Assembly (NCBI RefSeq): GCF_031769215.1
Contig: NW_026782147.1
Span: 124,001-188,000, forward strand
Source: Ylistrum balloti
Taxonomy: Eukaryota
Direction of reading: 5' to 3'
Length of the DNA: 64,000 bases
Below are positions 31,551 to 64,000 of the stretch, piece by piece. The notes under the pieces were generated by a model. It ran no database searches and was not told the DNA's origin. It was given only the letters and a program-made list of their open reading frames with translations. Position 1 is the stretch's first letter. Every line of letters begins with the position of its first letter. The translations under genes were made by a program, and so were the position numbers.

Positions 31551-33211
31551 TCAGGGACATTTGGGTATATCCTCGCGAATGTAGTCTGTAAAATACTTGT
31601 GTATATTGTGACACTGTCCACCACCATCAAGAAACTGCTGAAGGCCGATCCAATGTTTCATCCATCCGAGTTCTGAGCAGGAACACTCAATAGGTATGTT
31701 GTCTAATCCAACGGCTCTGAGGGCCGGAAGTCGTTCAATAGCTCTGGGAAACCCCGGAAGTTTTGTAAAATCTATATTCAGGTATTGAAGGCTGTACGTA
31801 TCGTTGAATGCATCCATTGATATATTGGCTAGAGGAGTTTTGTCCAGGCTTAATTCACGTAATTTTTGAAGACCTGCCAGGTCCCCTTGTCCAATATTTG
31901 TCACTTTGGTATTATGCATCGTAAGCGTATTTAAACTCCTGATATGGCGCACAGGGACTGGAATACGATCTATATCCGTGTTACTGAAATCTATTGACTG
32001 TATCAGTGGCTGTTTCGGTAATGTAGTTACATCCCATGTCGACAGTGGTGAGTTGGTTATGGTCAGATAGGTAAGAAATGGATTAGTGGATATATTTGGA
32101 ACACGCGTTAAACTGCTGTTACTTATGAAAATTACTCCAAGAGAGTCCATTCCACTCAAAGCGTCATCAGGTATGCCTTCAGATTTCAATTCAATATTAT
32201 CTGTGATAGACAGACCTGTCGTTGTCTTAAGTCTCTTCAGTGCTTTCGGAAAAGCTTTGAATTTTGTTGATGTAAACGTCAAAAGGCTGACAGCGTTTTC
32301 TAAACCTTCAAATGCATCTGAAGGTAGATCTGACATTGGTAAATTATATAGCGTTAAACTCCAAACGGATTTTAGAGTTCGAATTGAGTCAGGCCATGTC
32401 GTCATTTCCGGCGATCCGACATCGAGAAACCGTAGAGTTGACGAGAAAGCCATTTTCTGTGGAAGTGTTTCGATAGGGTTATCATTGATGCTGAGCATAG
32501 TGAGGTTTGGCATTCGTGCAATTTCGTTCGGAAGTTCCTTAAATTTATTGAACTGCATAAAAATAGTTCCAAGATATGGTTCTGATCCATTCAGTGCTCC
32601 ATCCTCCATTATTTCAAAGCCGTTATGGCTAATACGAAGATTACAAAATGGAACATTATCGAAAGCTCCAGCTGGAATCCTCTTAATATTGAAATTATTG
32701 TTCATGACGAGACTCCAACAGTTCCACGAAGCGTTTACCTTGGTGAAGGACGGAAATTCTGTCTGAGTAAGATTGCTGCATTCTATTTCGTTAAAGCTAC
32801 ATTTGCACGGAGTCTTCACTGGACAAGGTCTTGGATCGTCAGGTACAAAAGAACCATTTGTGTCAATAATCATTAACAACTGAAAGAATATATAAACATC
32901 AGACGTACATTACTATAAAAGGATAAGAGATGACGTTCACTGGTGAGAGGGTTACCAGCGATCGGCTTTAACACCAAGAGACGTCGTTTACTTGGGACAG
33001 GTACAACAAAGTGATATGGATATGTATGGGTTATGTTTACAAGGTTAATGTAAACAACTGATTGACAATCGATATGAAAGTACGATGTTTGTTGGGGAAG
33101 GGAACCTGGTCAGAGATTTCAATATGGAAGAATACTTCACTACATTACAGGACGACAAATCTACGTATTACTCACCGTGATTAGACAGACACTTACTCCA
33201 TGTGTTGCCAT
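31551..33211 (-). CDS. Secreted LRR-only protein, type A (LRR1), about 454 aa
   Basis: Exon 1 33211-33176 encodes MATHGVSVCLIT, donor gtgagt. Acceptor ttctttcag, exon 2 32879-31551. LRRNT CPVKTPCKC, tandem LRRs, cap CSCSELGWMKHW...C...IPKCP*. No TM or GPI tail. Confidence 0.92.
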
Positions 33212-33258
33212 TTTAACAAGTGGCCTTTGACCGAGTCTTGAACTTTTCTAACCTCAAT

Positions 33259-33288
33259 ATCTTATCTCGTCATCTGTCTGTTTACCTT
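33259..33288 (-). promoter_or_regulatory. Forkhead + TGACG + GATA module upstream of LRR1
   Basis: Minus strand GTAAACA-n6-TGACG-AGATAAG. The GATA site is 50 bp from the ATG. Confidence 0.6.
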
Positions 33289-33452
33289 GTAGGAACTTAT
33301 AGAGTTATATGATATTTCAATATGATTTTGACGTTGGGATTTCTTTAAAACGACACAGATATATGAAAATTTGAATTGTGGGGCTTTGACGTTTTTATCG
33401 ATCACTTTGGATTTTACTCAGTCGCCTCCTACTTTATGTAGGTTTGAACCGT

Positions 33453-33500
33453 GACATCACTGACGAGTCCTAGAAGGACGACGAAACAGGGATATGATGC
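33453..33500 (+). ncRNA. Hammerhead motif (HHR-g) with intact core and a 3-nt duplication
   Basis: ACATCA CTGACGA GTCC TAGAA GGAC GAC GAAA CAGGGA TA TGATGC. Confidence 0.75.
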
Positions 33501-33874: not shown

Positions 33875-34420
33875 AGTGCTGACATCAAAGTGCTTGGTCA
33901 AAGTAGATTTGGTGATTTATATCAATACATAAAATCAACTGCTGGCTAGAAAGGAAAATTATGTACCACGCAATATCTTATTTTATTATCACCCAAAATT
34001 AAACATTAACCGGAATGATAGGGTGCGAAACATCGTCATCGTTCTAGTGGCCAACGCAATACAACCATCAAGCATTCCGTACATTTGGTTAATTCTTGTG
34101 ATCAATACAAAGAAATCACCAACAGTCAAGCCAAGTCGAAGTCGCACACGTAAAAGTAACGGTTTCTGTACACAACACTAGCTTTCTGACAGCAGTACTT
34201 TTGATTGAAGGAACGTTGAAAGGGAGGTAACTCAAATACGAAATCATACCTCATTTGTGTTCTATTTGATATTGATCTATAATGTATATTGTATTCATAT
34301 CTTGATGTGTGTTGGTTATAAACACAAATATATTATATCATAAATCAGTTTTCATTTTATATTAGATTTTTTGGCAATGAGGCTTTGAGTCAAGTTTCAT
34401 TTGATCGCATATGAAAAGAA
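33875..34420. repeat. Second copy of the 28630-29240 block
   Basis: Colinear matches as listed for the first copy. Confidence 0.85.
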
Positions 34421-34636: not shown

Positions 34637-35971
34637 TCACGTTCCACATCTTGGTACATATTCTCGCATATACGTCATCAATTCCATGCCTATATTGTTA
34701 CACGTCCCTGACCCTGTCAAGCGTCTCAGAGACTTCCACTCCCTCATCCATCCTAGTTCTTTACAAGTACATTCTACATCATCACCTGACATGTTGAGGA
34801 CGTAAAGCGAGTCTACCTCACCTAAGGCTCTCGGCACACCGACGACGTTGGTGTTGTCAAAATCGATGGAATACAGCATCATGTTTTGTTTCAAAGCATT
34901 TACAGCAATAGTTTCCAAATGTGAGTGGCTAAGGTCAAGGTTTTTCAATAGACCCAAATTAGACAAATCAGAGTCATCAACGTTTGATACGTTTGTGTAT
35001 CTCATCGACAAGTTCTCTACCAGTGGTGTTTGACGAAGAGCTGCTGGAATATGATCGAAGTCTGTGTTATCGAGTGTGATATTTCTCAGTTTAGGGTTGC
35101 GTGGCAGGGTGTCTGGTTCCCAAGATTGTAATGGAGAATATGTTATGTTGATATCTTGTAAGTTAGGACTTTGTGAAATATTGGGCATGGCTGATAGACT
35201 ACTATTTTCTACAAGTAATGAAGTGAGTGATGTAAGATTGTGAATGTCAAGCGAGGAGAGAAGATGGTTCCCAGTAACCGATAAATGTTCTAAATTATTG
35301 AGCACGTGCACGCTGTCCGGCATTCCTTCACATTCATTAGCATGCAGCACCAGCGTCTTCATCTTACCGGCCATATTGAAGAATGCATCGAACGGTAAAG
35401 CTGAGCAAGGGAGACCTGTTATTGTGAGGAACTTCACTGCATTAAACTGGTCTATATACTTTGGCCATGGCATGTATTCAGATCCAATCGTAAGGTTTTG
35501 AAGTTTCGAGGCAAATGACATACTTGTTCCAAGAATTATAAAAGGATTGTCTTGCATTGTCAGTGTCTCCAGGTTTGTCAGATCGTCAATAGCGTTTGGC
35601 AGATAGCTAAACTGGTTCGACTCCATGTGAACGGAAGTGACGACATCATTTGAACCTACCAAGCAGTCCATGGACAAGGTGCTCATTTGATTGTGTGACA
35701 TATTAAGTGAGACGACTGTTATGTTTTCGAATGCTCGTTTGGGGATTGTAGTAAGCTGGTTGTTACTAATATCTACCACCCAGCGTTGCTGGCGGCCATT
35801 GATCATACCGGGAACATGGGTCAAGCCTTTCCCACTGCAGTCAATGATAATATCCTTGAGGCTACAAGTACATGGCGGCGGGGCTGGACATGCTGGACGT
35901 TCATCAACAACAAAACGTGCTTCTACTACTGCTATCACCACTGCCACCTGCATCAAATATAGACACATCAT
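34637..35971 (-). CDS. Secreted LRR-only protein, type B (LRR2), about 444 aa
   Basis: Signal-like N-terminus, CPAPPPCTC LRRNT, LRRs, CTCKELGWMREW...VPRCGT*. The true start is uncertain. An in-frame acceptor precedes 35947, and a candidate exon 1 at 36278-36240 encodes MDLKLQPYYVNAL with donor gttagg. Confidence 0.88.
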   Translation of the reverse strand: MMCLYLMQVAVVIAVVEARFVVDERPACPAPPPCTCSLKDIIIDCSGKGLTHVPGMINGRQQRWVVDISNNQLTTIPKRAFENITVVSLNMSHNQMSTLSMDCLVGSNDVVTSVHMESNQFSYLPNAIDDLTNLETLTMQDNPFIILGTSMSFASKLQNLTIGSEYMPWPKYIDQFNAVKFLTITGLPCSALPFDAFFNMAGKMKTLVLHANECEGMPDSVHVLNNLEHLSVTGNHLLSSLDIHNLTSLTSLLVENSSLSAMPNISQSPNLQDINITYSPLQSWEPDTLPRNPKLRNITLDNTDFDHIPAALRQTPLVENLSMRYTNVSNVDDSDLSNLGLLKNLDLSHSHLETIAVNALKQNMMLYSIDFDNTNVVGVPRALGEVDSLYVLNMSGDDVECTCKELGWMREWKSLRRLTGSGTCNNIGMELMTYMREYVPRCGT

Positions 35972-37032: not shown

Positions 37033-37779
37033 TACCAAAACCATATCACTGGTACCAGATCACTATGGCATATTGTCTATAACAAGCATAAACAGTAGTA
37101 CTTACAAAGATAATTACGTAAATCATTTTGTGGTCGGCCACAGTGTTCCGTACTGTTTCATTCCTATCACACCAAGATAGACGGGGTATACGAGAAAGTG
37201 TCTCGCTTTAATGACATAACCCACTTATGTATAGAAACAAACACTTGTATTTCTGAAACAGAACCCATTGTGAATGGGAAAATATTTGACGTCTAGGCCA
37301 GGTAAAAATGTTGGTTAATGGACCGAAATATTAAGGTTACACCTTTTGTCGTGCTTTTATAAATGACACAAAACCGAATATAAAAAAGTATTGGACACAA
37401 CACTACCAGCTAGTGAGTTAAACTTCTCCGCATAGCCGTTTTATCTTCTTATGTCTTATCAGTAGTGTAAGAGGCCAAGGCTACAAAAATCGAGCGAGTG
37501 TATCTTAACACGGTTTTTAAACAGACATAGATCGGGAGATCACTAACTCCTCTAATTAAAGATTCTGATAATTTTTATCATTGTACAGTGTGTATTTCAT
37601 AGGAAAACGATTGTTATTTTACGTGTTCTATGTTCTATGTAAATATGCTACAGTTACATATACATTATATGAGTAAAAATGAATTCATGCTTCCATTTTC
37701 ATCCTTTACAGACTAATGCAATAATTATTGTTATTTAGACAGTTGAAAATTAAAGGGAAGCTTTAAGGTTGCCATGGGA

Positions 37780-38070
37780 TTTCGTTCAGAAATTTTGTAT
37801 GATATCACGCTGGACGTGCTTGATGCTAGTTACTTATTTCGTAGATTCTGTTGTTGTATACCTTGTTCTCATTTGAGATCATGACATTACTTACTTAGAT
37901 TGACCAATGTTTACACGGTGGGTATTGCCGTTGAAGCAGAAGACGCTTACTCTTCCTGAACACCTGTTCTAAGTCTACTTGTACTTTTTCAGGAGTCTCC
38001 GTGTAAAGCTTTCGTTCTTTTGTTCATATTTTGACGTAGTTCTATTGCGTTTGCATACGAGTATGTTGAC
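37780..38070 (+). mobile_element. PLE 3' UTR remnant
   Basis: gaagacgcttactcttcctgaacacctg and its flanks match the reverse complement of 41790-42030. Confidence 0.7.
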
Positions 38071-38953
38071 GTGTTGGTATTTTGATGATATTTTTTTTGT
38101 GAAAATGCTTTGATAGAATGTGATGTGATTTATATATGTTCATGGATGGACACGGAAAATTGGACTTTTTATCACCGTTGCATGTCTGTAATAACTGGCT
38201 TCAGGTTGAAGTTTTTGAAACGTGTTTCATTTTCCTCAAAGTAATGTATATCAGATGTGTCCTAACCTCGGTTAAATGCATAATCAAACAAAGAAAAAAA
38301 TCAATTTAACGGGAAAATCAAATTATAAATTACGAGTTAATAAGTCCCTGTGTTTTGATATACACAGATAAATTTGACTTGTTACCGATAATTTTAGAAT
38401 ATAAAAGAGATTATCATTAATGGCAATCACATAATGCTTTAAGGTCACATTAACTAAATTATCCATTTCCATTTGGAAATACCAAGCAAACGTAATCACA
38501 CAATCACTGGCTGTGGATCGCTATTTTACTTATCAGTGACACCAATTACATGTCTCATTATCTCAACGAGTCTTTTGTACAAATTTAATTGAAGAAGTTT
38601 TTTATCATAGTGAGGGTTGCATCATCTAGAATAAGTTTTTTTAAGACTGTGCTGTTATCGTATAAACAAAATCCGGATGCCTGTTTCCCTATAACTGACA
38701 CAGATAACTTATATTGCAAAATTCGAAGAAAGAAATCGAGCAGTGGTACAAGACAGTCCTCGTCAAGTATGCAGACACTGAAATCAGTATTGCTATGTCA
38801 GGTTTTAAAATTTTGGTAATTGTTTGAGAGAATCTTACCTGAACTTCTATCACAAACATACAAACAATTAAAATATAAAAATGAATAAATATATAAATTT
38901 CAGCGACTTTTTTCTTATCTGTTGATTTATTTGAAACAACGGTTGTGTCTTCT

Positions 38954-39420
38954 TCAAGGACACTTGGATACCTTCCCGCAAACCTAGTAAGTAACTCGTA
39001 ACACTCTCCACTAAAAATGCTTGACGACCAATCTAATTTTCATCCATTCTGTCAGTTCTGAGCATGAACATTCAAAGGTTTTTTTCTAACCTTATGAATC
39101 TGAGGGCCGAAAGTCGGTCAATACCTCTAGGGATTCCTTGGAGTTTTGTCAGATCTGATTTAAGGTCTTGAAGATGCAACGCAAAAACGCTAAAATACGA
39201 TAACCACTAATATCTTACGTATACAGGAACTCGCCTGTGCAATAAGGCAATGTTCTACTTGTTTCGTCTTTAGTGTTATGCATTTTCAATCAGAACGGAA
39301 CGTGGATTCATTTGGAGACATACGAATATTTCCTTCTGTGGGTGTTTCTTTGAGACAGTGATTGTTGTAGGAATACAAACTGCGTTTACCGGTGGTGGTA
39401 TAATAAGGATTTACATAATG
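38954..39420 (-). pseudogene. Decayed 3' half of a type A LRR gene
   Basis: tcaaggacacttggatacc equals the paralogs' VP/PKCP* end. gttctgagcatgaacattc (CSCSEL) and ctgagggccgaaagtcggtcaatacctctagggattcc (PRxIxRLxAL) are recognisable. Frameshifts and stops present. Confidence 0.8.
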
Positions 39421-40158: not shown

Positions 40159-42781
40159 TTAAGGGCACTTGGGTACCTCTTCGCGAATATAATCTGACAA
40201 ATACTTGTGTATATTGTGACACTCTCCATCGAAACCCAAGTACTGCTGCCGAGCAATCCAATTCTTCATCCATCCAAGTTCGGAACATGAACATTCGATA
40301 TTAATGTTATTTAACTCTACATTCCTCAGAGCCGGAAGTCGTTCAAGAGCTCTTGGAATTCCAGGGAGTTTTGTGGAATCGAAATTTAGGCTTTGAAGAC
40401 TGTATGCTTCGTTGAATGCGTCAATAGATATATTGGTCAAAGGGGTTTGATAAAAGCTAAGGAAGCGTAACTTCTGGAGTCCAGCGAAGTCCCCGGGTCC
40501 AATAGTTGATAACTTGGTATTGTCCAAAGTCAATGTAGTTAAACTCCTGATACGACGTATGGCAGCCGGAACGTGATCTATATCCGTGTTACTGAAATCT
40601 ATTGACTGCAGCAGTGGCTGTTCTGGTAATGTAGTTACATCCCATGTCGACAGTGGCGAGTTAGTCAACGTCAAGTGGGTAAGGAATGGAACAGCGGAAA
40701 CATTCGGAACACTCTTTATACTACTGTTGCTTAAGAAAATGTCTCCAAGTGATTCCATACCCATGAAAGCGTCATCTGGTATATTTTCAGATGATAATAC
40801 AATATTATCGAAGAAAGCCAAATCGGTCATTTTCTTCAGTCTCTTTAGTGCTTTTGGAATACCTTTGAGTACTGTTGATTGAAACGTCACACCCTGGATA
40901 ATGTCCTCTAAACCTTTAAATGCATCTAAGGGCAAATCAGACATCGGTAATTTATACAGTGTCAAACTCCAAACTGATTTCAGCGTTCCAATTGATTCCG
41001 GCCATGTCGTCATTTCCGGTGATCCTATATCAAGAAATTCAAGAGTGGGTGCAAATGCCATCATCATCGGAAGGGTCTTGATAGGGTTGTCATGGATACT
41101 TAACATGGTAAGGTTTGGCATTCGTGCGATTTCATTTGGAAGTTCTGTAAACTTATTGAACTGCATAAAAACAGAATCAAGATATTTTTCCGATCCATTC
41201 AATGCCCCATCGTCTATTACCTCAAAGCCATTACGATCAATCTGAAGAGTGCAAAAAGGGATATTATCGAAAGCTCCAGCCGGGATCCTTTTGATGTTGT
41301 AGTTATAATTCATGTTAAGTTTCCAACAGTTCCAGGTAGCGTTGACCTTTGTAAAGGTAGGAAATTCAGTTTGAGTGAGATTGTTGCATGTTATAGCATT
41401 GTAATCACAGCTGCAAGGAGCCTTTACAGGACACGGCCGGGGATCATGTGGATAAGCAGAACCATGTGTGGCTGTAGTTACCAGCAGCTGTTGAGGAATA
41501 CAAGCACCCAATACATTCTCTAGGACAGGATTTGTATTGTGGACATATAAAACAAAAGGGCGTTAATATGATGAACGAATTTTGTTAAGGATTGTATAAG
41601 AAAAGACAATACAAACACAAATTAGAATGCGAGAGAGAGAGGTTCCCTTTTATCAATGAAACTGTTGTAATATACAGCTGTTTGTCTTTTTAGAACTCAT
41701 CACTGATATGAAGTATCTACAATATTGAAAAAAAAATCAAGAAAATACCAACATGGCAATATCATCATAATTTAAACTCAAATTCCATAAAACTAGAGCA
41801 AATATGAACAAAACGAAGATTTACCCGGAGACCCTTAAAAAAGTGCAAGGAGAATATGACCAGGTGTTCCGGAAGAGTAAGCGTCTTCTACTTTATCGAC
41901 GACACCCGCCATGTAAACCTTGGTCAATCAAATCAAGTAATGTCACGTTCTCAAATGAGAACAAAGTATACAACAAAGGAATCAACAGGCAAACTAACGA
42001 GCATCAAATACGTCCAGCTTCATATCGCACAAAAGAATTAGAACATTTCGCAATGACATCACTATGGCGACCATAAAACTTCATCCTTTTAACATTTGTG
42101 TCACGAGCTTGTCAGTCTGTTGACGACTTCTTGCACGAAAATCGTGATGATGGGAACAGGCTCTTGAATATCGAATCAACTGTGACATGTTAATACCATA
42201 GATTGGAGATGAATTGATTGAAAAAGGTAATAACTGGTGAGAACCAATGTCATTATATAAATCGTCAGTAAACTTACCCTATAGTGCAATCATTGTTAGA
42301 AGGTTCGTTAATAGTCGATGTACAACAATATAGAAATATTTACAGAGGCTGACGTGTGCATAGGAAAACGAATGAAAAATCATAATTTTTCGTGGAGGAT
42401 TTCGAGGGATTTTCCAGGAATACATGTTTTCGTGAATCGATCAGCTGTTAAAATCAGTATCATCTGATGGCGTGGGTGTTATCTATTAATGAAATTAAGA
42501 CACCACGGAATTTGGCCACACGAAAACATATCATTTGACAAACAACGTATTGATTTTGATTTTAAAATGACGATGATGATTAACTGCTTTAAACAACGTA
42601 TTGAAATCAATATCCATCAAACGGTTGTAAACAACTTCTGGGCACTGATATGAAAGGACAAAATGACATTGATATTAAATAATGAAAAGGAAAACACGAT
42701 TTCAATATCAGCAGAATTTTGTAAAGATTTTAAACGATTACTCACCGTGATTAGACCGATATTTATTCCATGTGTTGCCAT
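40159..42781 (-). CDS. Secreted LRR-only protein, type A (LRR3), about 454 aa
   Basis: Exon 1 42781-42746 MATHGINIGLIT with gtgagt donor. Acceptor ctcaacag, exon 2 41487-40159. Same architecture as LRR1. Confidence 0.92.
41667..41708 (-). ncRNA. Hammerhead motif, degenerate (HHR-i), at the 3' end of a PLE remnant
   Basis: Minus strand ATCA GTGATGA GTTC TAAAA AGAC -AAA CAGCTG TA. Confidence 0.55.
41725..42190 (-). mobile_element. PLE C-terminal remnant plus 3' UTR inside LRR3 intron 1
   Basis: Minus strand SQLIRYSRACSHHHDFRARSRQQTDKLVTQ...FYGRH, typical of the PLE RT C-terminal region, then the UTR with gacgcttactcttccggaacacctggtc. Confidence 0.8.
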
Positions 42782-42828: not shown

Positions 42829-42858
42829 ATCTTATCTCGTCAACTATTTGTTTACCTT
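42829..42858 (-). promoter_or_regulatory. Forkhead + TGACG + GATA module upstream of LRR3
   Basis: cttatct at 42831-42837, cgtca, and tgtttac at 42849-42855. GATA is 50 bp from the ATG. Confidence 0.6.
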
Positions 42859-44048: not shown

Positions 44049-45961
44049 TCAGTGACATTTCGGCACGTCCTCCCGAATATAATCCGTCAAATACTTGTGT
44101 ATATTGTGACAATTTCCGCTGAAATACAGATATTGTTGCTGCCAACCAATCCAATCTTTCATCCAACCAAGATCTGTACATGAACATTCAATTGTTATGT
44201 TTAACAAACTCACAACCCTAAGAGCCGGAAGTCGTTCAATAGCTCTAGGAATTCCTGGAAGTTTAGTAGAATCTAAACCCAAGCCTTGGAGACTGTAAGT
44301 ATCGTTAAATGCGTCGATTGATATATCCGTCAGAGGAGTTTGATTCAGGCTAATGAAGCTTAACTTCTGGAGTCCTACTAAGTCATCTGATCCAATAGTT
44401 GTTACCTTGGTATTGTCAAGGTTTAATGAAGTTAAACTCCTGATACGTCGCACAGCGGCCGGAATATGATCTATATCCGTGTTACGGAATTCCACTGATT
44501 GTAGCAATGACTGTTCTGGTAAAGTAGTCACATCCCATGATGACAGTGGTGAATCGGTCAAGGATAGGTGGGTGAGAAATGGGACAGTGAACACATTCGG
44601 AACACTTTTTATACTACTGTTGCTTATGTAAATGTTTCGAAGCGACTCCATACCTTTGAAAGCGTCATCAGTTATGCCTTCAGATGCCAATGCAATACTA
44701 TCTGTGATAGACAAGTCTGTCATGTTCCTGAGTCTGCGCAGTGCCCTTGGAATAACCTTTAAGTTTGTTGACGAAAACGACACATACAGGATGACGCCCT
44801 CTAAACCGTCGAATGCATCTAAGGGTAAATCAGACATCGGTAACTTATAAAGGGTCAAGCTCCATACCGATTTTAGAGTTCGGATTGAAGCCGGCCATAT
44901 TGTCATTTCAGGTGATCCGATATCAAGCAATTGCAGACTGGGCGCAAACGCCATTTTCTGTGGAAGGGTCTTGATAGGATTGTCATGGATACTAAGCATA
45001 GTGAGGTTTGGCATTCGTGCAATTTCATTTGGAAGTTCTCTGAAGTTATTGAACTGCATAAAAACAGAATCAAGATACGGTTCCGATCCATTCAGCGCCC
45101 CATCCTCTATTACTTCAAACCCATTATGGCCAATCTGTAGGGAACAAAGTGGGAGATTATGAAAAGCTCCAGCCGGAATCCTTTTGATGTTGTAGTTGTA
45201 ATTCATAATAAGTGTCCAGCAGCGCCACGTAGCGTTGACCATTGTGAAGGTAGGAAACTCCGTTTGAGTAAGATTGCTACATTCCACTTTACTGATATCA
45301 CAAATGCACGGAGCCTTAGCGGGACACGGATGGGGGTCATCGTGTACAGAGACAGGGATACCCTGTAGGACTTTGGCCAGTAACAACTGTGGACGAAATG
45401 TTAACAATAATGGGCATTATAATAAATATACAACTTTTACATATAGACATAACCACAATAACATTGTGACGCTTACAAAGGAGTTAGCTTTACCTTTGCA
45501 TGACAATGCCAATATGTAAGCTATAACCATAAAGATGTGTGATTTGAATAAATGCCTCCAGTTCGTGACCATTATGTCGTCAGTATTATGGACATAAAAA
45601 CGTTCGTGGTGCACTTGAAGGAATGGTTATCGATAATAAATAGTAATAAGGTTATAATGTGCAAAATATAGCAACTTTGGAAAGGGCAGTATATATTAGA
45701 GTTTTGAAGGCATTCGTACAATTTTGTTCTGTGACATGTGCCCGCAAAGTTCTGTCAATTACAACGGCTATAAATAAAATAAGGTGATTTGTTCATGTTG
45801 AAGTAAACGTTTATATAACTGGCAAAAATTAAGGCGAGTGTAAACATGTATATAAAATATTTTTTATCATTATACATCAGATTTTTTTAATAAAAGATAA
45901 ATATTTTTTTTATTAATATACTTACCGTTATTACACCGACAAATATTCCATGACTATCCAT
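44049..45961 (-). CDS. Secreted LRR-only protein, type A (LRR4), about 457 aa
   Basis: Exon 1 45961-45926 MDSHGIFVGVIT with gtaagt donor. Acceptor gtccacag, exon 2 45386-44049. Ends VPKCH*. Confidence 0.92.
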
Positions 45962-52085: not shown

Positions 52086-52908
52086 GTTTACAAGTGGGTT
52101 ATCAATGAGAGGTCCGAATTCTGTTACCTCAAATACCTTATCTCTTGTATTTTCATTGTGTGACCCAAAAGGAGAAATTTTCATGGCTTAAAAGTTTACA
52201 CAAGCTTGCCTATGTTTCTACAGCGATATAAAAGACATCGAAAAAGATATTACGGTGAAGTCGGTTTTTTTTAAATGAGTGGACATTTCTGTAAAAAAAA
52301 ATCTTGATTCCGTCTCGAATCGTCCGAGAACGCCCTCTCAAATATAGCACATGTAATGAAACATGGCAATTTCATAACGAGGCTGCCACATTTGTTAATT
52401 GTGGAAGAAGTTAATTTTCCTTCTGTGATTTGTTTCGTAATGAACATGGTAACCGGTTTATCATAACTTTAACTATATTCGATAAATAACATTTGTTATT
52501 ATACTATCACAGTTTCCCTACTTTGCTCACCTCTAAATTTAGAAATCTAAACGTGAATATAGCTCAAGCTTAAATGACTCGAGCACACGTATGGATTGAC
52601 CACATGACCACAACAAAATTAATCTGAAATTAATCGTCACCGTCAACGTTTGCTTACGTCTTTCTATGTTCTAATAACAAGTTTTTTCCATCATTTAATA
52701 TTGTTAACATGCTGCGTTGACGGAAATGTCTCCAGCTGTTGCGTAATTGTATATACGCCAACCTCACAGTTTTCATAGAATAAATAGCTGTACATGTCAG
52801 TCATGTTTAAGATAGGTAGTGATTCTACAAAATAGTTAGTAGTGATGCTACAAAATAGTTAGTGATGCTACCTCACCGAATATGCTGTAACTACATTGAT
52901 TAGTTACT

Positions 52909-52954: not shown

Positions 52955-52957
<3 letters not shown>

Positions 52958-53662: not shown

Positions 53663-55979
53663 TTACGAAATCATTGTTTCATCTGGACAATTTGGTACAT
53701 TGTCTCTATAGTAGCCAGCTAGACTGACATTCGGTAAGTTATCACAGTCACCTATTGGTATCATATAATTGCTACCGTCCCAATGTTTCAGCCATCCCAA
53801 ACTAGCACAGGTACAAATGATCTTGTTGCCTTCAAGGTCGACATTACGGAGATATGGGAGTCCATTGATTGCCTTTGGTATCGTCGTCAGGTTTGTGTTG
53901 CTGAGGAACAAGAACTGAAGGTTCCTTGTATCTCTTAACGCTTCATCAGAGAAGGAAATAAGCGGAGCATTTGTAATACCGATGTATGTTACCTTTGTTA
54001 GACCTTCGAAAGCTGATGAGGGCACAGAACGTATGCTACTGTTGCGAATAATTAGAGTTTGCAGATTTTTCATTTTGGCAATTGCGGTAGGAAATTTTTC
54101 CAATAAGGTATCTGAGAATTGTATATTTTGTAAATTGTTATCATCTGGAATTAATGAGGCATCAAAATGGGTAATAGGAGTTCCGGTAGTTTCGATGGTA
54201 GTTATTGTCAGGGCGTCATGAAAAATATCGGGAATTGTATCAAAGCTCTGGTTAGTGATAGAAATCTGGTTCAATGATTTAATACCGCTGAAAGCCTCCC
54301 TCGGAATTCCTGAAAGCGTCAGATTGGGGTTGCTGTCAAGAGACAGAAGATCAAGAGCATCTAACGTGCTCAGCGACAACGGCAAACTTCGGATGCGACA
54401 TCTCTCGAATTCAAGTAGACCTAGCTTTTTTTCAAGACCCGAGAACGCTGACAAGGGCAGGTAATCCATTGCTAGATCTCTGACCGAAAGACTGGTTAAG
54501 TTTGTTAAATATCGTATTGAATCAGGCCAAAATGACATTCCCGGGTAGCCGAAATTTAAGTACTGTAACGTGGAGGATACATTCTGAAAAACATCCGCTT
54601 GGAAATCTAGGACAGGGTTTCCGTCAATCCCAAGAGAGGACACATCCCTCATCATGCCTAATGCAGTAGGTATTTTCGTCATTTTATTATTTCTCATGAA
54701 CAGAAATTCAAGAGTGTTTTCGGCGCCATAGAGAGCGTCGTCTGCTATGTTCATAATCTGATTGTCTGCAAGTTTTAAATAATATAGACCTGTGATGTTC
54801 ATGAAAGCTTTACTTGGAATATCTTTGATGCTGTTTGAACTCAGATCAACCCATCGGAAACTTCCGTTTGAGAATGTGAATCGAGGCACTTCAGTCAGAT
54901 TCCTGGAATCGCAGTTTATACTGTTCCCGTCACAGTCACAGGGAGGTGGCGCTGGACATGGTATAGCTGATATACTTACATCTGGTGTCAGCAACTACAA
55001 GGAAATGAGATGTTTTGTGTACCGCAGAAAGAACACGCGTTTTCAAATTTGTTCGGTAATAAAAATGCAATTATGTTATAATCGGTAAAAAAGATATTTA
55101 AATTTTGAAAGAATTTTATCTCAAAATATGAATTCTTAAACAGTCGATGCTGAACAGCGAGTGTTCTTGTAGTCCAAATATATGCGGAAGCAGCATTACT
55201 GTTATCTAGAAATGGCAAATTCACAATGCAAAACTGAAAGCACCACTCTTAAATATTACAGCTTTGTGGAAAGCTGTGTCTGGAAGTTACGTTGTAGATC
55301 TGGAACTGAAGCAATAAATTGTCGTGCTCTTTGTTTTCATCTTTAGGAGTGTAATTATAACGGACAAGGTCCATAACTATCTACATGTAGTAATTAGTTA
55401 GTTAAAGACTGCTTCAATAGATCTAAATAGGAAATAAAGGTCTGATAAGATATGAAGTACATTTTCTCAACATCTCTGCGATAAATCCAACATTGTATGA
55501 AAACAAAAACAACTCAGCAAAGATCGGGACGTAGTTAGATTATATGGCTTTACCACATAAGACCTTAGGTATTTCACGAGGACGAAATTTCGGCCATGTC
55601 CATACATAGGTAGTTGTGTATACAGACATATAACATATATTTTCTTAGGTTTAGACTTGCTGAAAAATGTTTTATTTTGTTCTTAAATTCGCGATATTTC
55701 AATGACCACGAAAATGACGAATAAATTCCTCCGGGAATATTAAGCAAAACCCTATTGATTTCTTTCGAAAAAATCAAATCTTTATGTAATGATTTCCTTG
55801 AGTAAGTCAACGTTTATATAAAGTTCTTAAATTGTCCACAATTTCATCGATAAATGACCTCAGTAAAATGCATTTTATATCCAAACAGACCTGTCAATAC
55901 TATGGCTTTTCGTGAAAAATTGTTGATTATGATGTATACTTACAATATATATGAAAGGAATGATTGTGTAGACATACAT
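53663..55979 (-). CDS. Secreted LRR-only protein, type C (LRR6), about 455 aa
   Basis: Exon 1 55979-55944 MYVYTIIPFIYI with gtaagt donor. Acceptor ttccttgtag, exon 2 54994-53663. CPAPPPCDC LRRNT and CTCASLGWLKHW...VPNCPDETMIS*. AGATAAG lies 18 bp upstream of the ATG. Confidence 0.92.
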
Positions 55980-55997
55980 GTTGTAAGGTGTTAGGTC

Positions 55998-56186
55998 TTA
56001 TCTCGCATTGTCTACGTTTGCCGATAGATCGTCTATCTTTAATCCTTTTATCTTTTGTAAAAACGTCTGAGAAAGGTGTCCGGTTAACACTGTCTGTCGG
56101 TTTTTGAAGTTCCCAACTTCCTCTATAAGCCCAGAAAATTTGAAATTATAGTTCCGCTGTTTCATTTTTCTTTCAATATATTTCAA
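55998..56186 (-). mobile_element. Possible LINE ORF1 remnant
   Basis: RKMKQRNYNFKFSGLIEE loosely resembles the RxxNLxFxGIxE motif of LINE ORF1 proteins. Confidence 0.25.
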
Positions 56187-56688
56187 TATCTGAAAAAGTC
56201 ATGTTACTTTTACTATCAATATTGTGTGCCTCCATATCTCTCATTCCTGTATTTAGTATCCCCGAGTGGTGAAACTTCAGTGTAGAATTTTATATGTATA
56301 TTTAAAAGTGCCATTGACAGAAAAAAGGTGCTAAGATCTATAGCAGTTACTGTTGATGTAGCTTCTGTTGTGATGTTTCTTCAATACATATCTTCTACAT
56401 CATGTCGAAAGTAGGTGGAATATCCTCACGTGTCCATATGTTCATCACGCATGATTATTTAGTAAAATACACTTAATAATATATCTAGATATATTGTTCT
56501 AGAAAAAAACATTAGTTTTAGTTTAAATGTAATTGAATTATCGATGGTGTGAAAATGTTTGCGTCATGAAATAATCACATACCTATCTACAGCTAGACTA
56601 GACGATTTTAATACACATTAGCAATAGTTTATACCATCGAGATAGTCGTTTAGTGGGAATACAAGATAAGGCTGAAGATCTTAACGAC

Positions 56689-58976
56689 ATGTATCTGTAT
56701 ACAATGTTTCCCGTAATATTTACTGTAAGTATTAAATTCGTATAAAGTTTGTTTTTACATGCTATGTACTCTCTGCGAAGTGTTTTTGACTTTCACTGTT
56801 GAATTGAATCACCTTTGATTCGTTTGTCCTCTACTCCTTTCCTATTTTCCATATGCATCGTTTTGCATACTGGTAATCGTATTCTGATTGGGAACGTCAT
56901 ATTACTTCCTTGGACTGACCAAGATTTACACGACAATTGTCTTCCGGGACACCTGGTCTTGTTTTCTTTGTATTCCGTCTAAATTATTTTTTGTCCATAT
57001 TTGGCCCTAGTTTCGGTGTCCCCATCAGAAACACCTAGTGGTCACTAGAATCACTATTTCTTTCCCTTTTTTGTTTCTTTGATATGGTAACATGGAAGTC
57101 AAAATGATATTGGACCTGAAAAATTCGTTGAACAGAATATTTATTGTTTTCCCAAAATTTCTTACAAGGCGATTTCTACGAACCCTAACAAATGCACATT
57201 ATCGCTTCCCTTATAAATGTCGAACTTTACCATAAAAGACACGCCGTCTTTGTCCGTATCCTCGCTGCTCATGAATTACGTCTTCGATAATTGTGTCCCT
57301 GCAATGTAGTTTTTTCATTGTTTCAGTATTAAGGATATGATGATCAGAAAAAAAGGTTTTATGTAGATCCACTCATACAATCATTTTCAAATTGCATATT
57401 TATATGCTGTATAATTTAGTATTACATATATACAAGCAGGATAACAGTCCAGGGCTTTCGAACTCAGAATTGTTCGTATTTGATAAATTTGCCATTTCAT
57501 CCTCGTAGATTTCCGGAAAAATCATAAAACACAATTATTGATCAAAAAAATATCAAACTTGTTTGCATTTTAACAGTAAAAGTTTACGGTTTAATTGTAA
57601 GAAACGAAAACTTTGTCTTGAAACGGTGACTTTCATATTCACAGTTGCTGACAATCCTTCTCATACTAGATGTTTGTAAGGCAGTCATACCATGCCCAGC
57701 GCCACCTCCTTGTGACTGTGACGGGAATAACATCAACTGTGATTCCAGGAATCTGTCAGAAGTGCCTCGATTCAACCTGTCGAACAGAAGTTATTGGTCA
57801 CTTGATCTCAGTTCAAACAACATTACGTATATTCCTAGTAAAGCTTTCGTTAACATCACAGGTTTATATGAATTAACCCTTGTAGGTAACCAGATAGAAG
57901 ACATGGCAGACGACGCCCTCTCTGGGGCTGAATACACGCTGAATTTTCTGTTCATGAGAAACAATAAAATGTCGAAAATTCCTACTGCATTAGGCAAACT
58001 GAGAAACGTAAGTTCTCTTGGGATTGATGGAAACCCTGTCCTAGATTTCCAAGCAGACGTTTTATAGAATGTCTCATCCTCACTACAGTATCTAGCTTTC
58101 GGCTATCCGGGAATGTCATTTTGGCCTGAATCAATACAGTATCTAACGAACTTATTGAGTCTGTCAGCCAGAGATCTAAGTATGGATTACCTGCCCTTGT
58201 CAGCGTTCTCAGGCCTGGAAAATTCTCTAGGGCTGTTGGGTTTAGACAGATGTAGTATACAAAGCCTGCCGTTGTCTCTTAGCACATTAGACAATCTTGA
58301 AATTCTGTCACTTGTCGGCAACCCTAATCTGACGCTTTCAGGAATCCCGATGGAGGCTTTCAGCGGTATTAAATCATTGAACCAGATTTCTATCACTAAC
58401 CAGAGCTTTGATACAGTTCCCGATATTTTTCATGACGCCCTGACAATAACTACCATCGAAACTACCGGAACTCCTATCTCTCATTTTGACGCCTCATTAA
58501 TTCCAGATGATAACAATTTACAGACTATACGCTTCTCGGATACCTTGCTGAAGAACGTTCCTCCCGCAATCGCCAAAATGAAAAATCTACAATCTCTGAT
58601 TATTCACAACAGTAGTATGATTTCTGTTTCACCATCAGCATTTGAAGGTCTTAATGTGATAAGATACATTGGTATTACAAATGCTCCTCTGAGTTTCTTC
58701 TCCGATGACGCTTTGAAAGATACACACAACCTCCAGTTCTTGTTCCTCAGCAACACAAACCTGACGACGATACCAAAGGCAATCAATGGACTCCCATATC
58801 TCCGTAATGTCGACCTTGAAGGCAACAAGATCATTTGTACCTGTGCTAGTTTGGGATGGCTGAAACATTGGGATGAGAACAATTACATGACACCTATAGG
58901 TGACTGTGACAACTTACCGAATGTCGACCTCAATACCTACTTCCGAGACCACGTACCGAATTGTCCAGATGATTGA
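56689..58976 (+). pseudogene. Type C LRR gene (LRR7), intact except for one premature TAG
   Basis: Exon 1 56689-56724 MYLYTMFPVIFT with gtaagt donor. Exon 2 starts at 57645. TAG at 58065-58067 where LRR6 has CAG (DVFQNVSS). The frame continues to ...VPNCPDD* at 58976. Confidence 0.88.
56885..57015 (+). mobile_element. PLE 3' UTR remnant inside LRR7 intron 1
   Basis: ggaacgtcatattacttccttggactgaccaagatttacac...cttccgggacacctggtc matches the UTR family. Confidence 0.6.
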
Positions 58977-59289
58977 AAGTTTTCCATGTAATGTTCCAGT
59001 TTGATGATGGTTTCGGATATAAAACTTCTCTATAGAACACGATATTTTTGTTCCGTGTATGAACAACAGACCCTATCCTCACTAATGTTTTTCTTCGTAT
59101 CCAACAGCATAATTATGATGAATATAATGCATGTTTAACATTGTGTGTCCTTCGTGCAAATTCATTTCTTGATAAAAAATTATAATGAAAAACGATACAT
59201 CAATAAGACCGATTTCCAAATCTTTAATCAAAGTTCATTTGAAAACATCAAGAAATGCCTAGAAGTAAAGACAATCGTAATCCTAAATA

Positions 59290-59495
59290 AAAATCGACGA
59301 AACAAGTCAAAACATGAACAAACAAACGATTTACACGGAAACCCTTAAAAAAGTAATGAAATGAGTCCAGGTGTTTCGGACTGGTAACCGTTGTGTAATC
59401 CTTGGTGAATCTAAGTAATGTCAGGTACCCGAATAGCAACAGAGTTAACAAAATTGAAATCACAAGGCACACTCGCGAGCATTGAAGACATCTAA
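59290..59495 (-). mobile_element. PLE 3' UTR remnant
   Basis: gatttacacggaaacccttaaaaaagt...ccaggtgtttcgga...aagtaatgtca matches 41815-41945. Confidence 0.6.
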
Positions 59496-60426
59496 TTTTT
59501 ATTGCACAAAGAAATGGAATTGAAATACCCAGTGCTTCGTGGCATTCTACGATCGTTAACACATGTTGACTATTGGTATTTACTTGTAACAGTTACATTT
59601 CAACTAATACTGAAGAATGCAATATCATAAATATTTTGGCATATTCTTGTTTGCTTATCCTTCACACAATAGGCAAACACCTTTTCGTTTGAAACCAGAA
59701 TTGAAAAGTAACATGAAGCAATTATTTTTGTTAGAATCTGACGCCATCTAAACGTCACTTGTTCAATTGTGATTTGGACACTTGATGAAACATGTCATGG
59801 ATAACAACAATGATTGACTTATATTTAAAAATCATATATCGAGAATTATTTCTTTTTTCCATTATGAACGTGTTTATTTCATTTGGTTTACAGTTTATTT
59901 CTGAAAATCTTTCAGATTTAATATCGTTGTTTGGACCTTTTATCTAAGTGTGGAATTATGGGGATAAATACAATAGATAACTTTCTTTAACATTAATTCT
60001 TACACTGTTTGAATTTCCGCTATTTTGGTATCAAATAAAAATGAGGAATTGCAATATTTACTCCGACTGCTAGGGCTACTAGCAGTACGTTAAAAAATTG
60101 AAACATTGAAAAGTGAGACTCGAAAGTGTTCTAAAACTTTACTTGGAGCACAAAGGTTAAGAGTTTTGCTTTATCCAAGTTACATGTTAAAAACATTAAA
60201 GGCAATAAATGTCAAATTGAAATGAAATACATCAGACCAATCCGTTTCTAGTTTAATGTATCGATGGCAGATCAACATATATGGAATAATACACTTTTCG
60301 AAACAAATAAGCACAAATGTCTTTTGATTCAACCTGAAAGGTTTTCAATTCAAGAGCAACCATGTTTGAAACATATTACAGTCCCTCTGGGAGTAAACAC
60401 CCAGTTGACGACAACGCCCTCAATAT

Positions 60427-60451
60427 GTAAACAAACGGTTGACGAGATAAG
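60427..60451 (+). promoter_or_regulatory. Forkhead + TGACG + GATA module upstream of LRR8
   Basis: GTAAACA aacggt TGACG AGATAAG, with GATA about 45 bp before the ATG at 60496. Confidence 0.6.
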
Positions 60452-60495
60452 GTAATGTCAGACGTCTGATTCTCACTGATAAACTACTTACTAAA

Positions 60496-62049
60496 ATGGC
60501 TATACATGAAACATACGTCATCTTTACGGTAAGTGTTTGAACGTTTTCAGGCATTGACTAGAAACAAAAACTCATGTCAAATGTTCACATCCCCTCTGTA
60601 AACGTTCACTCTTTTAAAATATCGACTTGTTTATATAATATGTTAACCTTGTTGTTGACACTTTCTCTGTATGTCCTACTTCATATTAATATCATTTAGT
60701 TGTTTACTTTTCCATTTCAGCTGTTGCTGATCTTTGTAATAAAATGCTCCTCTGAACTCGTTGACCCTCGACCCTGTCCTGCTAAACCGCCTTGCAGTTG
60801 TGACTTTAACACAGTGGAATGTCATAATCTCACTCAAACAGAGTTTCCAACCTTTACCAGGGTTAATTCAACATGGCACTGCTGGCGACTTCATCTGAAT
60901 TACAACTACAATATCAAAAGCATCCCGGCTGGAGCTTTCAGTAATCTTCCAATCTGTTCCCTTCAAATTGGCCACAATGCACTTGAAGTTATAGAGGATT
61001 GGGCGTTGAATGGATCGGAACCGTATCTTGATTTCGTTTTTATGCAGTTCAATAACTTCACAGAACTTCCGAGTGAAATTGCACGAATGCCAAACATCAC
61101 CATGCTTAGTATCCATGACAACCCTATCAAGGACCTTCCACAGAAAATGGCATTTGCTTCCAAGCTCCAATTTCTCGATATCGGATCACCGGAAATGACG
61201 ACATGGCCGAGCTCAATACGAACTCTAAAATCCGTTTGGAGCTTGACCCTTTATAAGTTACCGATGACCGATCTACCTTTTGATGCGTTTGAAGGGCTAG
61301 AAGACTCGAAAATATCTGTGACATGCTATACAGCGAAATTCAAGGGTATTCCGAAAGCAATGAGAAGACTTCAGAAAATGACAGGCCTATTAATCGCTGA
61401 TGATGTTGAACTTTCATCTGCAGGTATACCTGAGGATGCTTTCAATGGTATAGAATCACTAACAGAAATTACTATATCCAACAGCAGTATAACGACCGTA
61501 TTCAATATGTCCGCTATTCCTACACTTACCCAATTATCAATTAGCAACTCACCGCTGTCGACATGGGATGTATCTACATTACCAGAACAGCCACTGCTGC
61601 AGTCTGTAGGATTCAGTAACACAAATATAGATCGTATCCCAGCCGCTGTGCGACGTATTAATCGTCTCTATACATTAGCCTTGGATAATACCAAAATTTC
61701 CAGTATTGGGCCAGGCGACTTGGCAGGGCTACAGAAATTACAGGAATTGAATTTTAGGCAAACTCCATTAACCAATATATCCATGGACGCATTTAATGAT
61801 ATGTACAGTCTTATGAGTCTAAATTTAGATTTTACAAACCTATCAGGATTCCCTAGAGCTATCGAACGACTTCCGGCTCTGCGATTTTTGAGTTTACAAA
61901 ACATTACTATTGACTGTTCATGTGCAGAACTTGGATGGATGAAGAAATGGATTGGTTATAAGCAGTTGCGTGCTAGTGATGGAGAGTGTCACAACATCCG
62001 AATGGATTTGTTCGAGTATATTCGTAATGAGGTGCCGAAGTGTCCCTGA
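60496..62049 (+). CDS. Secreted LRR-only protein, type A (LRR8), about 453 aa
   Basis: Exon 1 60496-60528 MAIHETYVIFT with gtaagt donor. Acceptor ccatttcag, exon 2 60721-62049. Ends VPKCP*. Confidence 0.92.
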
Positions 62050-63344
62050 AGTATAAATAGACCCTTAAATTCAATGTTCAGTGTTTTGACATTTAACGCT
62101 GTTTGTAGTTAATTTAAATACATCAATGGACATGAACATATCCCATATTTCACTAGAAATAAATGTAACCTACATTTTGTTTCTGGAATATTAATCGGGT
62201 TTTTATTCTAGTGCAAAGTTTGAGAATGAGTTATCAATATACGCTATACATATTTGAATGCAAGTCTGTTTAAGTGTTTCCTGCCTGATTTTTTTATGTC
62301 ATTTTATTAAATCATACTCATCGTTGGGCACAAATTTGGAACATTGGGAACATTGTTTCATGGGCATTATATTTCGGGGATAAGTAATCCTCTATTATTA
62401 TAATGATATTAATTCTAACACAGATCGGATGTCATGCTTTTATGAACACACTATAGTTTGGTACGTCTGATCTTATAAGCTTTGTAGCAAACAAATTTTA
62501 CTAATATGATTTTGGAGTATGACATGACTGACTTGGATCGACCAAATTCTTTATCGTCGTTGTTGTCTTGTCGTCGACGAAGCAGACCTGTTTACCCTCC
62601 AGGAGCATCTGATATTATATTATATGGTTTGTACTTTTTCACTATTCAATATTCGCGTAACCATTTATTTTGTTCATGTTTGACATTTTAAAGTCATACA
62701 AGTACAGAAATATTCTATCTTTAATTGAAAAATTTGCCTGTACGGTTTTGCTTCACGGTAATTAACGCTTAAACGTAGTAATTAAACATGTACACACACA
62801 AATCTGAAACGTCGAACGAGCCGCGGTCTGGTCTAGAGCAGAATCACCAGAGTGTTTGATATCAATGCACATCATAATGATATTAACAAGATCAAAACGT
62901 TAAATAATTATAGAATTAGATATTTCAAAAGGCAGCTTATTAAAGTAGACACGCCAGCCAACAAAGAATGTGTACAAAGCTCAATGATGGTGAATAGCCA
63001 GGATTTACCACAGAAAACACAGATCGCGACCAATTTCCTACACTACCTTGAATATATACATAGAAAACGTCTTCGTTGTCAACTAAACACAGCATTCATT
63101 ATTCAACTTCTTAAAATCAATGTTATATTGATAAATTTGATGTCATTTAAATGAAAAGGAAATTACTTATAACATTTCATTAACGTCAATCATTGTTATA
63201 CAATATCGCAACATAACGAAAAGCATAGGTCAAACTTATCACATGGCAAGGAGGGTGCGAATTTGCGTCATTCTGTGTGCATTAAAATATGTTTTTTTTT
63301 ATTATTATTTTATTTTAGTCAATTGTAAAGTTTACTATTAAAAA

Positions 63345-63530
63345 CCGACAAAGAAAATGCCGACTTGTCAATAAAATCTAAATACAAACTCCAGTTTGAT
63401 GAAACTTTATCACAATATCAACAGAATATTAACATAAATATCCATGAAAAAGGAGAGGGAGAATATGATAAGGTCTTCCGGTAGTCTACGTGTCCCTTGC
63501 TTTATCGACGATATCCGCCATATAAATCCT
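63345..63530 (-). mobile_element. PLE 3' UTR remnant
   Basis: ggagaatatgataaggtcttccgg...ctttatcgacgatatccgccatataaa matches 41848-41918. Confidence 0.6.
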
Positions 63531-63799
63531 ACTGTATCTCCATGCAAAACCAGCGTATTACTGAATAGTCACAGAATGGCCCCAATTGGCAATCTTCCTA
63601 ACACATGAACCAATTTACAACACACAAGATGTTCAATGGCAGTCAATCAACAACACTCGTCATACTACAATTAATCTTAATTTTTCAACGACAATATTGA
63701 CCACTTAGAAAATACCTCTGAATATCCAGTATCAGCAATCATTGAAAATTTGCCGAGGTATGTGTGTAATTTTGATTCAGTAAAACGGAAGTAGTTGTT

Positions 63800-64000
63800 T
63801 TAAGGACACTTAGGAACGTTCTGTCGCACATATTGCCAGACCTCCATGTTTCCTAGGTTGTTACAATGGCCGTTGATGCCGATTCTGCTAGCACCGGACC
63901 AGTTCTTCATCCAGCCCATCGACTGGCACGTACAGATTAATTTGTTTCCGAACAAACTCAAGATGTCAAATGTTACTTCCTCTACAGCACGTGGGATACT
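63800..64000 (-). CDS. 3' end of a further LRR-only gene (LRR9), running off the window
   Basis: Own translation: SIPRAVEEVTFDILSLFGNKLICTCQSMGWMKNWSGASRIGINGHCNNLGNMEVWQYVRQNVPKCP*. Same C-terminal cap as the other genes; absent from the ORF track. Confidence 0.88.
   Translation of the reverse strand, partial: SIPRAVEEVTFDILSLFGNKLICTCQSMGWMKNWSGASRIGINGHCNNLGNMEVWQYVRQNVPKCP

Follow-up and report, generated by a model that had tools for sequence, protein, structure and literature searches.

An old tandem cluster of predicted secreted leucine-rich-repeat-only proteins in the scallop Ylistrum balloti

The stretch of DNA analysed here, called the window, comprises 64,000 nucleotides of the saucer scallop Ylistrum balloti (contig NW_026782147.1, positions 124,001 to 188,000). 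It is AT-rich, eukaryotic DNA without runs of N, and its second half carries a tandem cluster of genes for proteins of the leucine-rich-repeat (LRR)-only type. The preferred reading, which is given a probability of about 0.55, is that this is the Y. balloti copy of an old scallop cluster, whose products are soluble extracellular LRR-only glycoproteins that have divided their specificities under purifying selection. These look like ordinary soluble binding proteins and not like a fast-diversifying immune system. The cluster is old and common to scallops. Because it is also under purifying selection, it does not resemble the outcome of an arms race.

A listing of open reading frames (ORFs) and tblastn searches with each copy recovered eight LRR reading frames of full length, all within 31.5-62 kb (Table 1). 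The cluster as a whole spans about 32 kb, from 31.5 kb to the end of the window. It holds five genes of subfamily A, one of B, two of C, an A-type relic and the 3' end of a gene of a fourth subfamily, D. The first nine loci are ordered A1-, B-, relic, A2-, A3-, A4-, C1-, C2+, A5+, and the order and strands given in the initial annotation of this DNA were exactly right.

By tblastn, the A proteins are 67-74% identical to one another and the two C proteins 80%, against approximately 34% for A-B and A-C and approximately 26% for B-C. The division into subfamilies proposed earlier is therefore sound, and so is the claim of a tandem family of LRR-only proteins. The last 66 codons of D are 35-45% identical to A, B and C. 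They run into the window edge, and the gene continues beyond it. The earlier count of at least ten genes is correct for loci, but as genes these are seven intact copies, one with a nonsense allele, one partial copy and one relic. Among the copies, DNA likeness does not reach beyond the coding exon and the short exon 1, and the intergenic DNA has diverged past recognition. No LRR fragment was found in positions 1-31500.

The assembled products are 443-457 residues long (49-51 kDa, pI 4.5-5.5), with 9-12 cysteines and 7-11 N-glycosylation sequons (NxS/T) per protein. Both cap motifs quoted in the initial annotation were found: CPxxxPCxC marks the N-terminal cap, CxCxxLGW...C...PxC the C-terminal one. 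A family alignment of 26 sequences shows little or no variation in four N-terminal and four C-terminal cap cysteines. In the same alignment the ladder asparagines are invariant in LRR1-4, and serine, threonine or other residues replace them in later repeats. Pfam models LRR_8, LRR_4, LRR_14 and LRR_5 scored above their cut-offs and no other family was matched. LRRNT fell just under its cut-off of 25.8 bits in B (24.7) and C (23.8) and had no match in A.

The reading frames stop 0-7 residues beyond the last cysteine of the LRRCT cap, and thus leave no room for a transmembrane segment, a glycosylphosphatidylinositol (GPI) tail or a TIR domain. The Pfam scan gave neither a TIR nor a 7tm_1 match in these proteins of only about 450 residues. 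An AlphaFold2 model of A3, built on the same alignment, is a single solenoid of 15 LRRs between two caps, with a predicted local distance difference test (pLDDT) value of 91.9 and a predicted template-modelling score (pTM) of 0.87. Searches of the PDB by sequence and by fold gave matches of 15-23% identity, all of them to generic LRR proteins of extracellular or SHOC2-like type. The Pfam results, the alignment, the fold model and the generic nature of these matches together make the earlier description of the proteins as LRR-only, without transmembrane, GPI or TIR region, a sound one. Language-model neighbours in the ESM Atlas, which serve as leads only, are all soluble LRR-only proteins.

Each full copy consists of two exons. 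The first, a short one, carries the 5' leader and the start of the signal peptide (7-12 codons); it is followed by a phase-0 intron and by one large exon, which encodes the remainder of the protein. Canonical GT-AG introns of this phase, 192-1258 nt long, occur in all eight copies, and a splice acceptor directly precedes every large ORF. The exon-1 regions of A1, A2, A3 and A5 are homologous, with a weaker match of 47 nt upstream of A4, and those of C1 and C2 are homologous to each other and to the C gene of Argopecten irradians. An RNA-derived contig of the latter (SRR19746228) is spliced exactly as predicted: exon 1 has 12 codons and the intron removed is 588 nt long. It encodes a clear signal peptide.

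Hydrophobic N-termini assemble from exon 1 and exon 2 in all eight genes. The signal peptides of the initial annotation thus stand as hydrophobic N-termini, though not within a single exon, as their first 7-12 codons lie in a separate upstream exon. Two gene models call for comment. Exon 1 of A1 offers two donors, GTAAGT after 5 codons, which is used in the NCBI model, and GTGAGT after 12 codons. The 12-codon position is the ancestral one, common to A2 and A3, and yields a normal signal peptide. For C1, the NCBI model uses a different first exon, which lacks a signal peptide and has no counterpart in orthologues; the exon proposed in Table 1 restores the signal peptide. Taken together, the hydrophobic N-termini, the eight cap cysteines, the sequons, the acidic pI and the stop directly after LRRCT suggest that the proteins are secreted.

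The public record of the cluster seems to be incomplete. The large exons of A1, A5 and C1 are identical to the Y. balloti RefSeq proteins XP_060070775, XP_060070778 and XP_060070777, respectively, which have been given the automatic names "LRR-containing protein 1-like", "soc-2 homologue" and "platelet glycoprotein V-like". Searches with A3 and B returned no exact protein record, and the hit lists of the A, B and C queries contained no record matching A2 or C2. A4 is present only as a fragment record without stated source, starting at an internal methionine. Several copies therefore seem to have no protein model in the collection searched. The family's names in public use, among them SHOC2, LGR4, flightless and platelet glycoprotein V, give a wrong impression. 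A separate case is a Pecten maximus XP record of 550 residues, a mis-joined model in which the C-terminal part of one A gene runs on into the whole of the A gene next to it in the tandem array.

Homologues of 64-81% identity were found only in the Pectinidae: P. maximus, A. irradians, Mizuhopecten yessoensis and Y. balloti itself. In any one species the family members all lie on a single contig or chromosome. Orthologues of B reach 67-81% identity in the three other scallops. The cluster of A. irradians occupies CM084271.1 from 38.159 to 38.204 Mb. Its genes are arranged as B-, A-, A-, A-, A'-, C'+, C+, A+, and a gene with a PARP domain comes next. The Ylistrum and Argopecten layouts agree apart from A1 and local duplications. 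At the place corresponding to A1, no A gene was found within 10 kb upstream of the A. irradians B gene. More remote relatives, of 25-28% identity, share the C-terminal cap and come from Mytilus californianus and from one ENA assembly, where a second copy lies 9.5 kb away and is read in three pieces.

The C' locus of A. irradians (L003 positions 7946-9218, CM084271.1) matches C1 in two frames that meet near 8420, and the NCBI annotation there shows only a "vasorin-like" protein of 256 residues. C' is likely either an assembly error or a pseudogene with a frameshift.

In a maximum-likelihood tree of 33 proteins, the B sequences group as one clade to which each of the four scallops contributes one copy, so that B looks one-to-one across the species sampled. 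C has one or two copies per species, and C1 and C2 of Y. balloti are sisters (support 100/99). Subfamily A falls into two old subclades, A4 with A5 and A1 with A2 and A3, both of which have counterparts in other species as well as lineage-specific pairs. A codon tree concurs on the pairs A4/A5 and A2/A3. The initial annotation had named conserved one-to-one orthologues across distant taxa, free of copy-number variation and of immune-tissue expression or induction, as the pattern that would speak against a diversified recognition system. Part of this pattern is seen here: B appears to be one-to-one among scallops, but the copy numbers of A and C differ between species.

Signs of birth and death of genes, which had also been proposed, are visible in the sister pairs A2/A3, A4/A5 and C1/C2, in one relic, in a nonsense allele and in the differences in copy number; the turnover is moderate. 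The mirror arrangement of A4- C1- and C2+ A5+, together with the two sister pairs that it contains, suggests an inverted duplication of a C-A pair. Synonymous divergence (dS) differs between the pairs, at 0.83 for A4/A5 against 0.50 for C1/C2, and for this reason such a duplication is put forward as a possibility only.

The nonsense allele concerns C2, which had been counted as an intact gene. Positions 58065-58067 of the assembly read TAG, in frame, against CAG in C1. The only other public DNA run holding this region was compared with the window over positions 56600-62100. Its contigs have C at 58065, so that C2 reads CAG there too and is not a fixed pseudogene. The stop is either a null allele of the assembled haplotype or an assembly error. 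Across 56.6-62.1 kb the two DNA sources differ at approximately 1% of positions, and the contig of the second run skips 534 bp at 59554-60089, an insertion/deletion polymorphism in the intergenic DNA between C2 and A5. The listed coding differences between the sources number, for C2, 5 nonsynonymous (including the change from stop to glutamine) and 4 synonymous. For A5 they number 5 nonsynonymous nucleotide changes, of which two fall in the same codon, and 3 synonymous ones.

Selection on the family is predominantly purifying. By the Nei-Gojobori method, the ratio of nonsynonymous to synonymous divergence (dN/dS, or omega) is 0.07-0.23 across all A pairs, 0.24 for C1-C2, and 0.11 for the B genes of Y. 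balloti and M. yessoensis. Values of dS are 0.74-1.5 between the A paralogues of Y. balloti, 0.5-1.5 for within-species paralogues of A and C overall, and saturated between species. Maximum-likelihood codon models of ten A genes gave an omega of 0.18 for all sites, 0.10 for core positions, 0.17 for convex and loop positions, 0.20 for the caps and 0.30 for all concave xxLxLxx positions. No site class in these genes had an omega above 1, and at this resolution positive selection is not detectable.

The concave face is not uniform. Omega at its positions is 0.14 in LRR1-6 and 0.45 in LRR7-14. In a set of 14 A proteins, concave positions of LRR7-15 have a mean entropy of 1.49 bits and those of LRR1-6 one of 0.71 bits; for convex positions of the same halves the values lie close together, at 0.77 and 0.65 bits. 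In LRR4-5 the concave face is even more conserved than the convex. Concave positions make up 14 of 36 among the most variable 10% of sites, where 7.6 would be expected (p = 0.008).

These patterns may be explained by a binding model. The proteins would be secreted and would act through binding, without signalling of their own. The concave face of LRR1-6, conserved inside a subfamily and in LRR4-5 above all, would hold a partner common to the paralogues, and the paralogue-specific concave face of LRR7-14 would give each copy its own ligand. With one half conserved and the other variable, the paralogues would split their specificities slowly under purifying selection, without a race against pathogens.

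Expression may be driven by a GATA factor. AGATAAG occurs in all five A genes of the window at a distance of 51-58 nt before the ATG, and in three A genes of A. irradians at 53-60 nt; in the C genes of the two species the distance is 20-25 nt. TGATAA is a further motif, present at -19 in A2-A5. The sequence flanking AGATAAG has diverged, and the whole 64-kb window contains 24 copies of the motif, counting both strands. AGATAAG is the consensus site of GATA factors, which drive gut and blood-cell genes in many invertebrates. The conserved motif suggests that such a factor controls the A and C genes, and this control would point to the digestive gland or the haemocytes as the place of expression.

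Several points weigh against this interpretation. The signal peptides were judged by eye, and with the NCBI donor the hydrophobic core of A1 is only five residues long. Omega values that are pairwise or averaged over classes would leave room for positive selection at a few sites. Sister pairs within a species could result from gene conversion instead of duplication. The binding model is drawn from patterns of conservation, and the contrast between a conserved and a variable half could reflect constraints of folding or of glycans, not two binding sites. Finally, AGATAAG lies inside the 5' untranslated region of the one orthologue with RNA evidence, A. irradians C, so that its effect, if it has any, may be on the RNA.

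One alternative is that the proteins are germline-encoded, diversified humoral pattern-recognition receptors, which bind microbial ligands and undergo birth and death under pathogen pressure. This is a real possibility, though an unlikely one. It would account for soluble LRR-only proteins that vary most on the concave face, for lineage-specific duplicates, and for a gene relic and a nonsense allele absent from the second DNA run. GATA sites are common near invertebrate immune and gut genes, which would suit it too, and the nearest language-model neighbours include, as a lead only, a mosquito "leucine-rich immune protein (coil-less)". The tempo fits poorly. The conserved Ylistrum-Argopecten layout, a single-copy B that looks one-to-one, paralogue dS of 0.5-1.5 (thus at least 0.5), and an omega of 0.18 overall that rises to 0.45 at most, on the variable patch, all argue against rapid diversification as the sense of the "diversified recognition system" in the initial annotation. 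There are also only about nine genes per species, not tens or hundreds.

The closest described precedents are CfLRRop-1 to -7 of the scallop Chlamys farreri. They have been described as pattern-recognition receptors that bind several pathogen-associated molecular patterns and induce effectors (PMC5877582, PMC10178686); lipopolysaccharide, peptidoglycan, glucan and poly I:C are among the reported ligands (PMC5877582). They come from the same animal family as Y. balloti and are LRR-only like the cluster proteins, and some are secreted (PMC5877582, PMC10178686). However, the 1-4 LRR motifs recognised in them (PMC5877582) set them apart, by description, from proteins with 15. No C. farreri protein, LRR-only or other, was found among the homologues of A, B or C in a collection that includes NCBI nr.

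The variable lymphocyte receptors (VLRs) of lampreys and hagfish share the LRRNT-LRR-LRRCT recognition scaffold of the cluster proteins. VLRs are assembled from an incomplete germline gene and cassettes, and have a stalk and a GPI anchor, whereas the cluster genes are complete in the germline and have none of these. The sole intergenic LRR fragment is one decayed 3' relic, there are no cassettes, and no C-terminal hydrophobic tail is present. Variation in the cluster lies between paralogues and is not somatic. Toll-like receptors differ in having a transmembrane helix and a cytoplasmic TIR domain, both of which are missing here. Derivation as a decoy from a Toll-like receptor was considered and rejected, since proteins with a TIR domain are only weak and distant matches.

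A further proposal would make A, C and D a scallop-specific humoral module. The conserved concave patch of LRR3-6 would serve for docking to a common partner and the variable patch of LRR7-14 for the capture of a microbial or dietary target that differs between paralogues; a GATA factor would drive expression in digestive gland or haemocytes, and segregating null alleles would tune the repertoires of individuals. It is speculative and has rather little probability.

Alternately, the proteins may be regulators of extracellular matrix or growth factors, of the type of chondroadherin, tsukushi, LRG1 or the acid-labile subunit of insulin-like growth factor (IGFALS), with host ligands in mantle, ligament, muscle or development. 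This is decidedly unlikely. The architecture is the same, a soluble run of LRRs between LRRNT and LRRCT, and strong purifying selection and conserved orthology groups would suit endogenous ligands. Chondroadherin and IGFALS appear among the PDB sequence matches, the Atlas neighbours include tsukushi, podocan and IGFALS-like clusters, and NCBI has named one M. yessoensis member "chondroadherin-like". These likenesses are generic to LRR proteins, at 15-23% identity; the chondroadherin match reaches only E ~1e-11 in the PDB sequence search and ranks under many unrelated LRR proteins. Outside bivalves the family is not detectable above approximately 28% identity. The varying copy numbers of A and C would be unusual for core components of matrix or signalling, and literature searches yielded no proteomic or expression record.

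Chondroadherin, tsukushi, LRG1/PLI-beta, IGFALS, the coil-less LRIMs of mosquitoes and leureptin of Manduca (cited in PMC10178686) are soluble and LRR-only and work through binding alone, as is predicted for the cluster proteins. No orthology to these vertebrate and insect proteins is detectable, and the cluster proteins have traits of their own: a first cap loop of the form Cx5CxCx6C and an asparagine ladder confined to LRR1-4. Class IV small leucine-rich proteoglycans have an N-terminal cluster of the form Cx3CxCx6-17C instead.

By structure, the proteins come closest to the ectodomains of LGR4/LGR5, LINGO-1 and LRIG1 (Foldseek, E 1e-11 to 1e-13, TM 0.43-0.63). Each is a single horseshoe of approximately 15-17 repeats with LRRNT and LRRCT, and this LGR-type likeness explains the automatic "LGR4-like" names of NCBI. 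At only 18-23% identity it is a likeness generic to extracellular LRR solenoids. These receptors also carry seven-transmembrane, immunoglobulin or transmembrane regions that the cluster proteins lack; in the LGR-type G-protein-coupled receptors this is a rhodopsin-type domain of seven helices, for which proteins of about 450 residues offer no counterpart.

Literature searches on the member accessions of M. yessoensis, P. maximus, A. irradians and Y. balloti returned nothing relevant, nor did searches on the SRA runs that hold transcripts or on scallop chondroadherin or LGR4. A paper on cadmium binding that names Y. balloti concerns a different LRR protein.

It is most improbable that the proteins are cytoplasmic scaffolds of the SHOC2, LRRC1 or flightless type, as the automatic NCBI names imply: about half of the repeats do fit the 23-residue "LxxLPxxI" pattern typical of SHOC2-like proteins, SHOC2 and Leptospira LIC proteins rank among the top PDB sequence matches, and the NCBI model of C1 has no signal peptide, but its first exon is without counterpart in orthologues, RNA from the C gene of A. 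irradians codes for a clear one, and disulfide caps with eight cysteines in LRRNT and LRRCT are kept family-wide along with hydrophobic N-termini and many sequons.

Table 1. Positions of the LRR genes, their exons and associated elements in the window
Feature	Position	Strand	Evidence or remarks
A1 ORF	31551-32879	-	ORF listing, tblastn
A1 exon 2 (mature protein: LRRNT, 15 LRR, LRRCT)	31551-32879	-	acceptor TTTCAG; matches XP_060070775 except exon 1
A1 exon 1	33176-33211	-	ATG at 33211; 81% identical to A2 exon-1 region
B ORF	34637-35971	-	ORF listing, tblastn
B main coding exon	34637-35971	-	start at in-frame ATG at 35971 or acceptor at 35947
B candidate exon 1	37106-37126	-	7 codons; goes with acceptor at 35947
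A-type relic	~38930-39182	-	last LRR and LRRCT only; stops and frameshift
A2 ORF	40159-41511	-	ORF listing, tblastn
A2 exon 2	40159-41487	-	acceptor CAACAG
A2 exon 1	42746-42781	-	12 codons, donor GTGAGT
A3 ORF	44049-45407	-	ORF listing, tblastn
A3 exon 2	44049-45386	-	protein used for structure model
A3 exon 1	45926-45961	-	12 codons, donor GTAAGT
A4 ORF	49867-51186	-	ORF listing, tblastn
A4 exon 2	49867-51186	-	ORF and acceptor
A4 exon 1	52050-52085	-	12 codons, donor GTAAGA; homology to A5 exon-1 region
C1 ORF	53663-54994	-	ORF listing, tblastn
C1 exon 2	53663-54994	-	100% identical to XP_060070777 over exon
C1 proposed exon 1	55944-55979	-	12 codons, donor GTAAGT; homologous to A. irradians C exon 1
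C2 exon 1	56689-56724	+	12 codons
C2 ORF	57645-58976	+	ORF listing, tblastn; in-frame TAG
C2 exon 2	57645-58976	+	TAG at 58065-58067 in assembly
A5 exon 1	60496-60528	+	11 codons; matches XP_060070778
A5 ORF	60700-62049	+	ORF listing, tblastn
A5 exon 2	60721-62049	+	ORF, XP_060070778
D, fourth subfamily, last 66 codons (last LRR and LRRCT)	63803-64000	-	runs off window
AGATAAG, approximate positions	33260-33270, 42830-42840, 46010-46020, 52135-52145, 60440-60450, 56000-56005, 56660-56670		
Dispersed-repeat copies	8911-9267, 37741-38097, 51838-52016, 59242-59391, 63351-63526	both	DNA self-comparison

Other features of the window can be listed briefly. A direct repeat of approximately 590 bp (70% identity) lies on both sides of A1, at 28631-29221 and 33879-34416. 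Possible explanations are a repeat element and a remnant of the event that brought A1 to its place upstream of B. A dispersed repeat of approximately 150-400 bp (65-81% identity, in both orientations), represented by 41730-42150, is probably a small transposable element. Its copies lie both within the array, where they occupy spacers and the A2 and A4 introns, and outside it. The ORF at 164-520 on the forward strand, 31 kb upstream of the LRR array, has a terminal OAR motif (Pfam PF03826, E = 2.4e-8); a paired-like homeobox gene probably has its last coding exon here. An Rfam scan of the whole 64 kb at default gathering thresholds found no RNA family, and a scan for tandem repeats found nothing relevant to the array.

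Bivalves have no adaptive immunity and are thought to depend on expanded families of binding proteins, which are mostly known as counts of domains. For this cluster, a vague "LRR expansion" can be replaced by a small set of defined proteins, with gene models, a syntenic cluster, a mapped variable surface and a candidate regulatory motif. The public annotation is corrected with respect to misleading names and to one model without a signal peptide. The evolutionary tempo of the cluster argues against an arms-race system.

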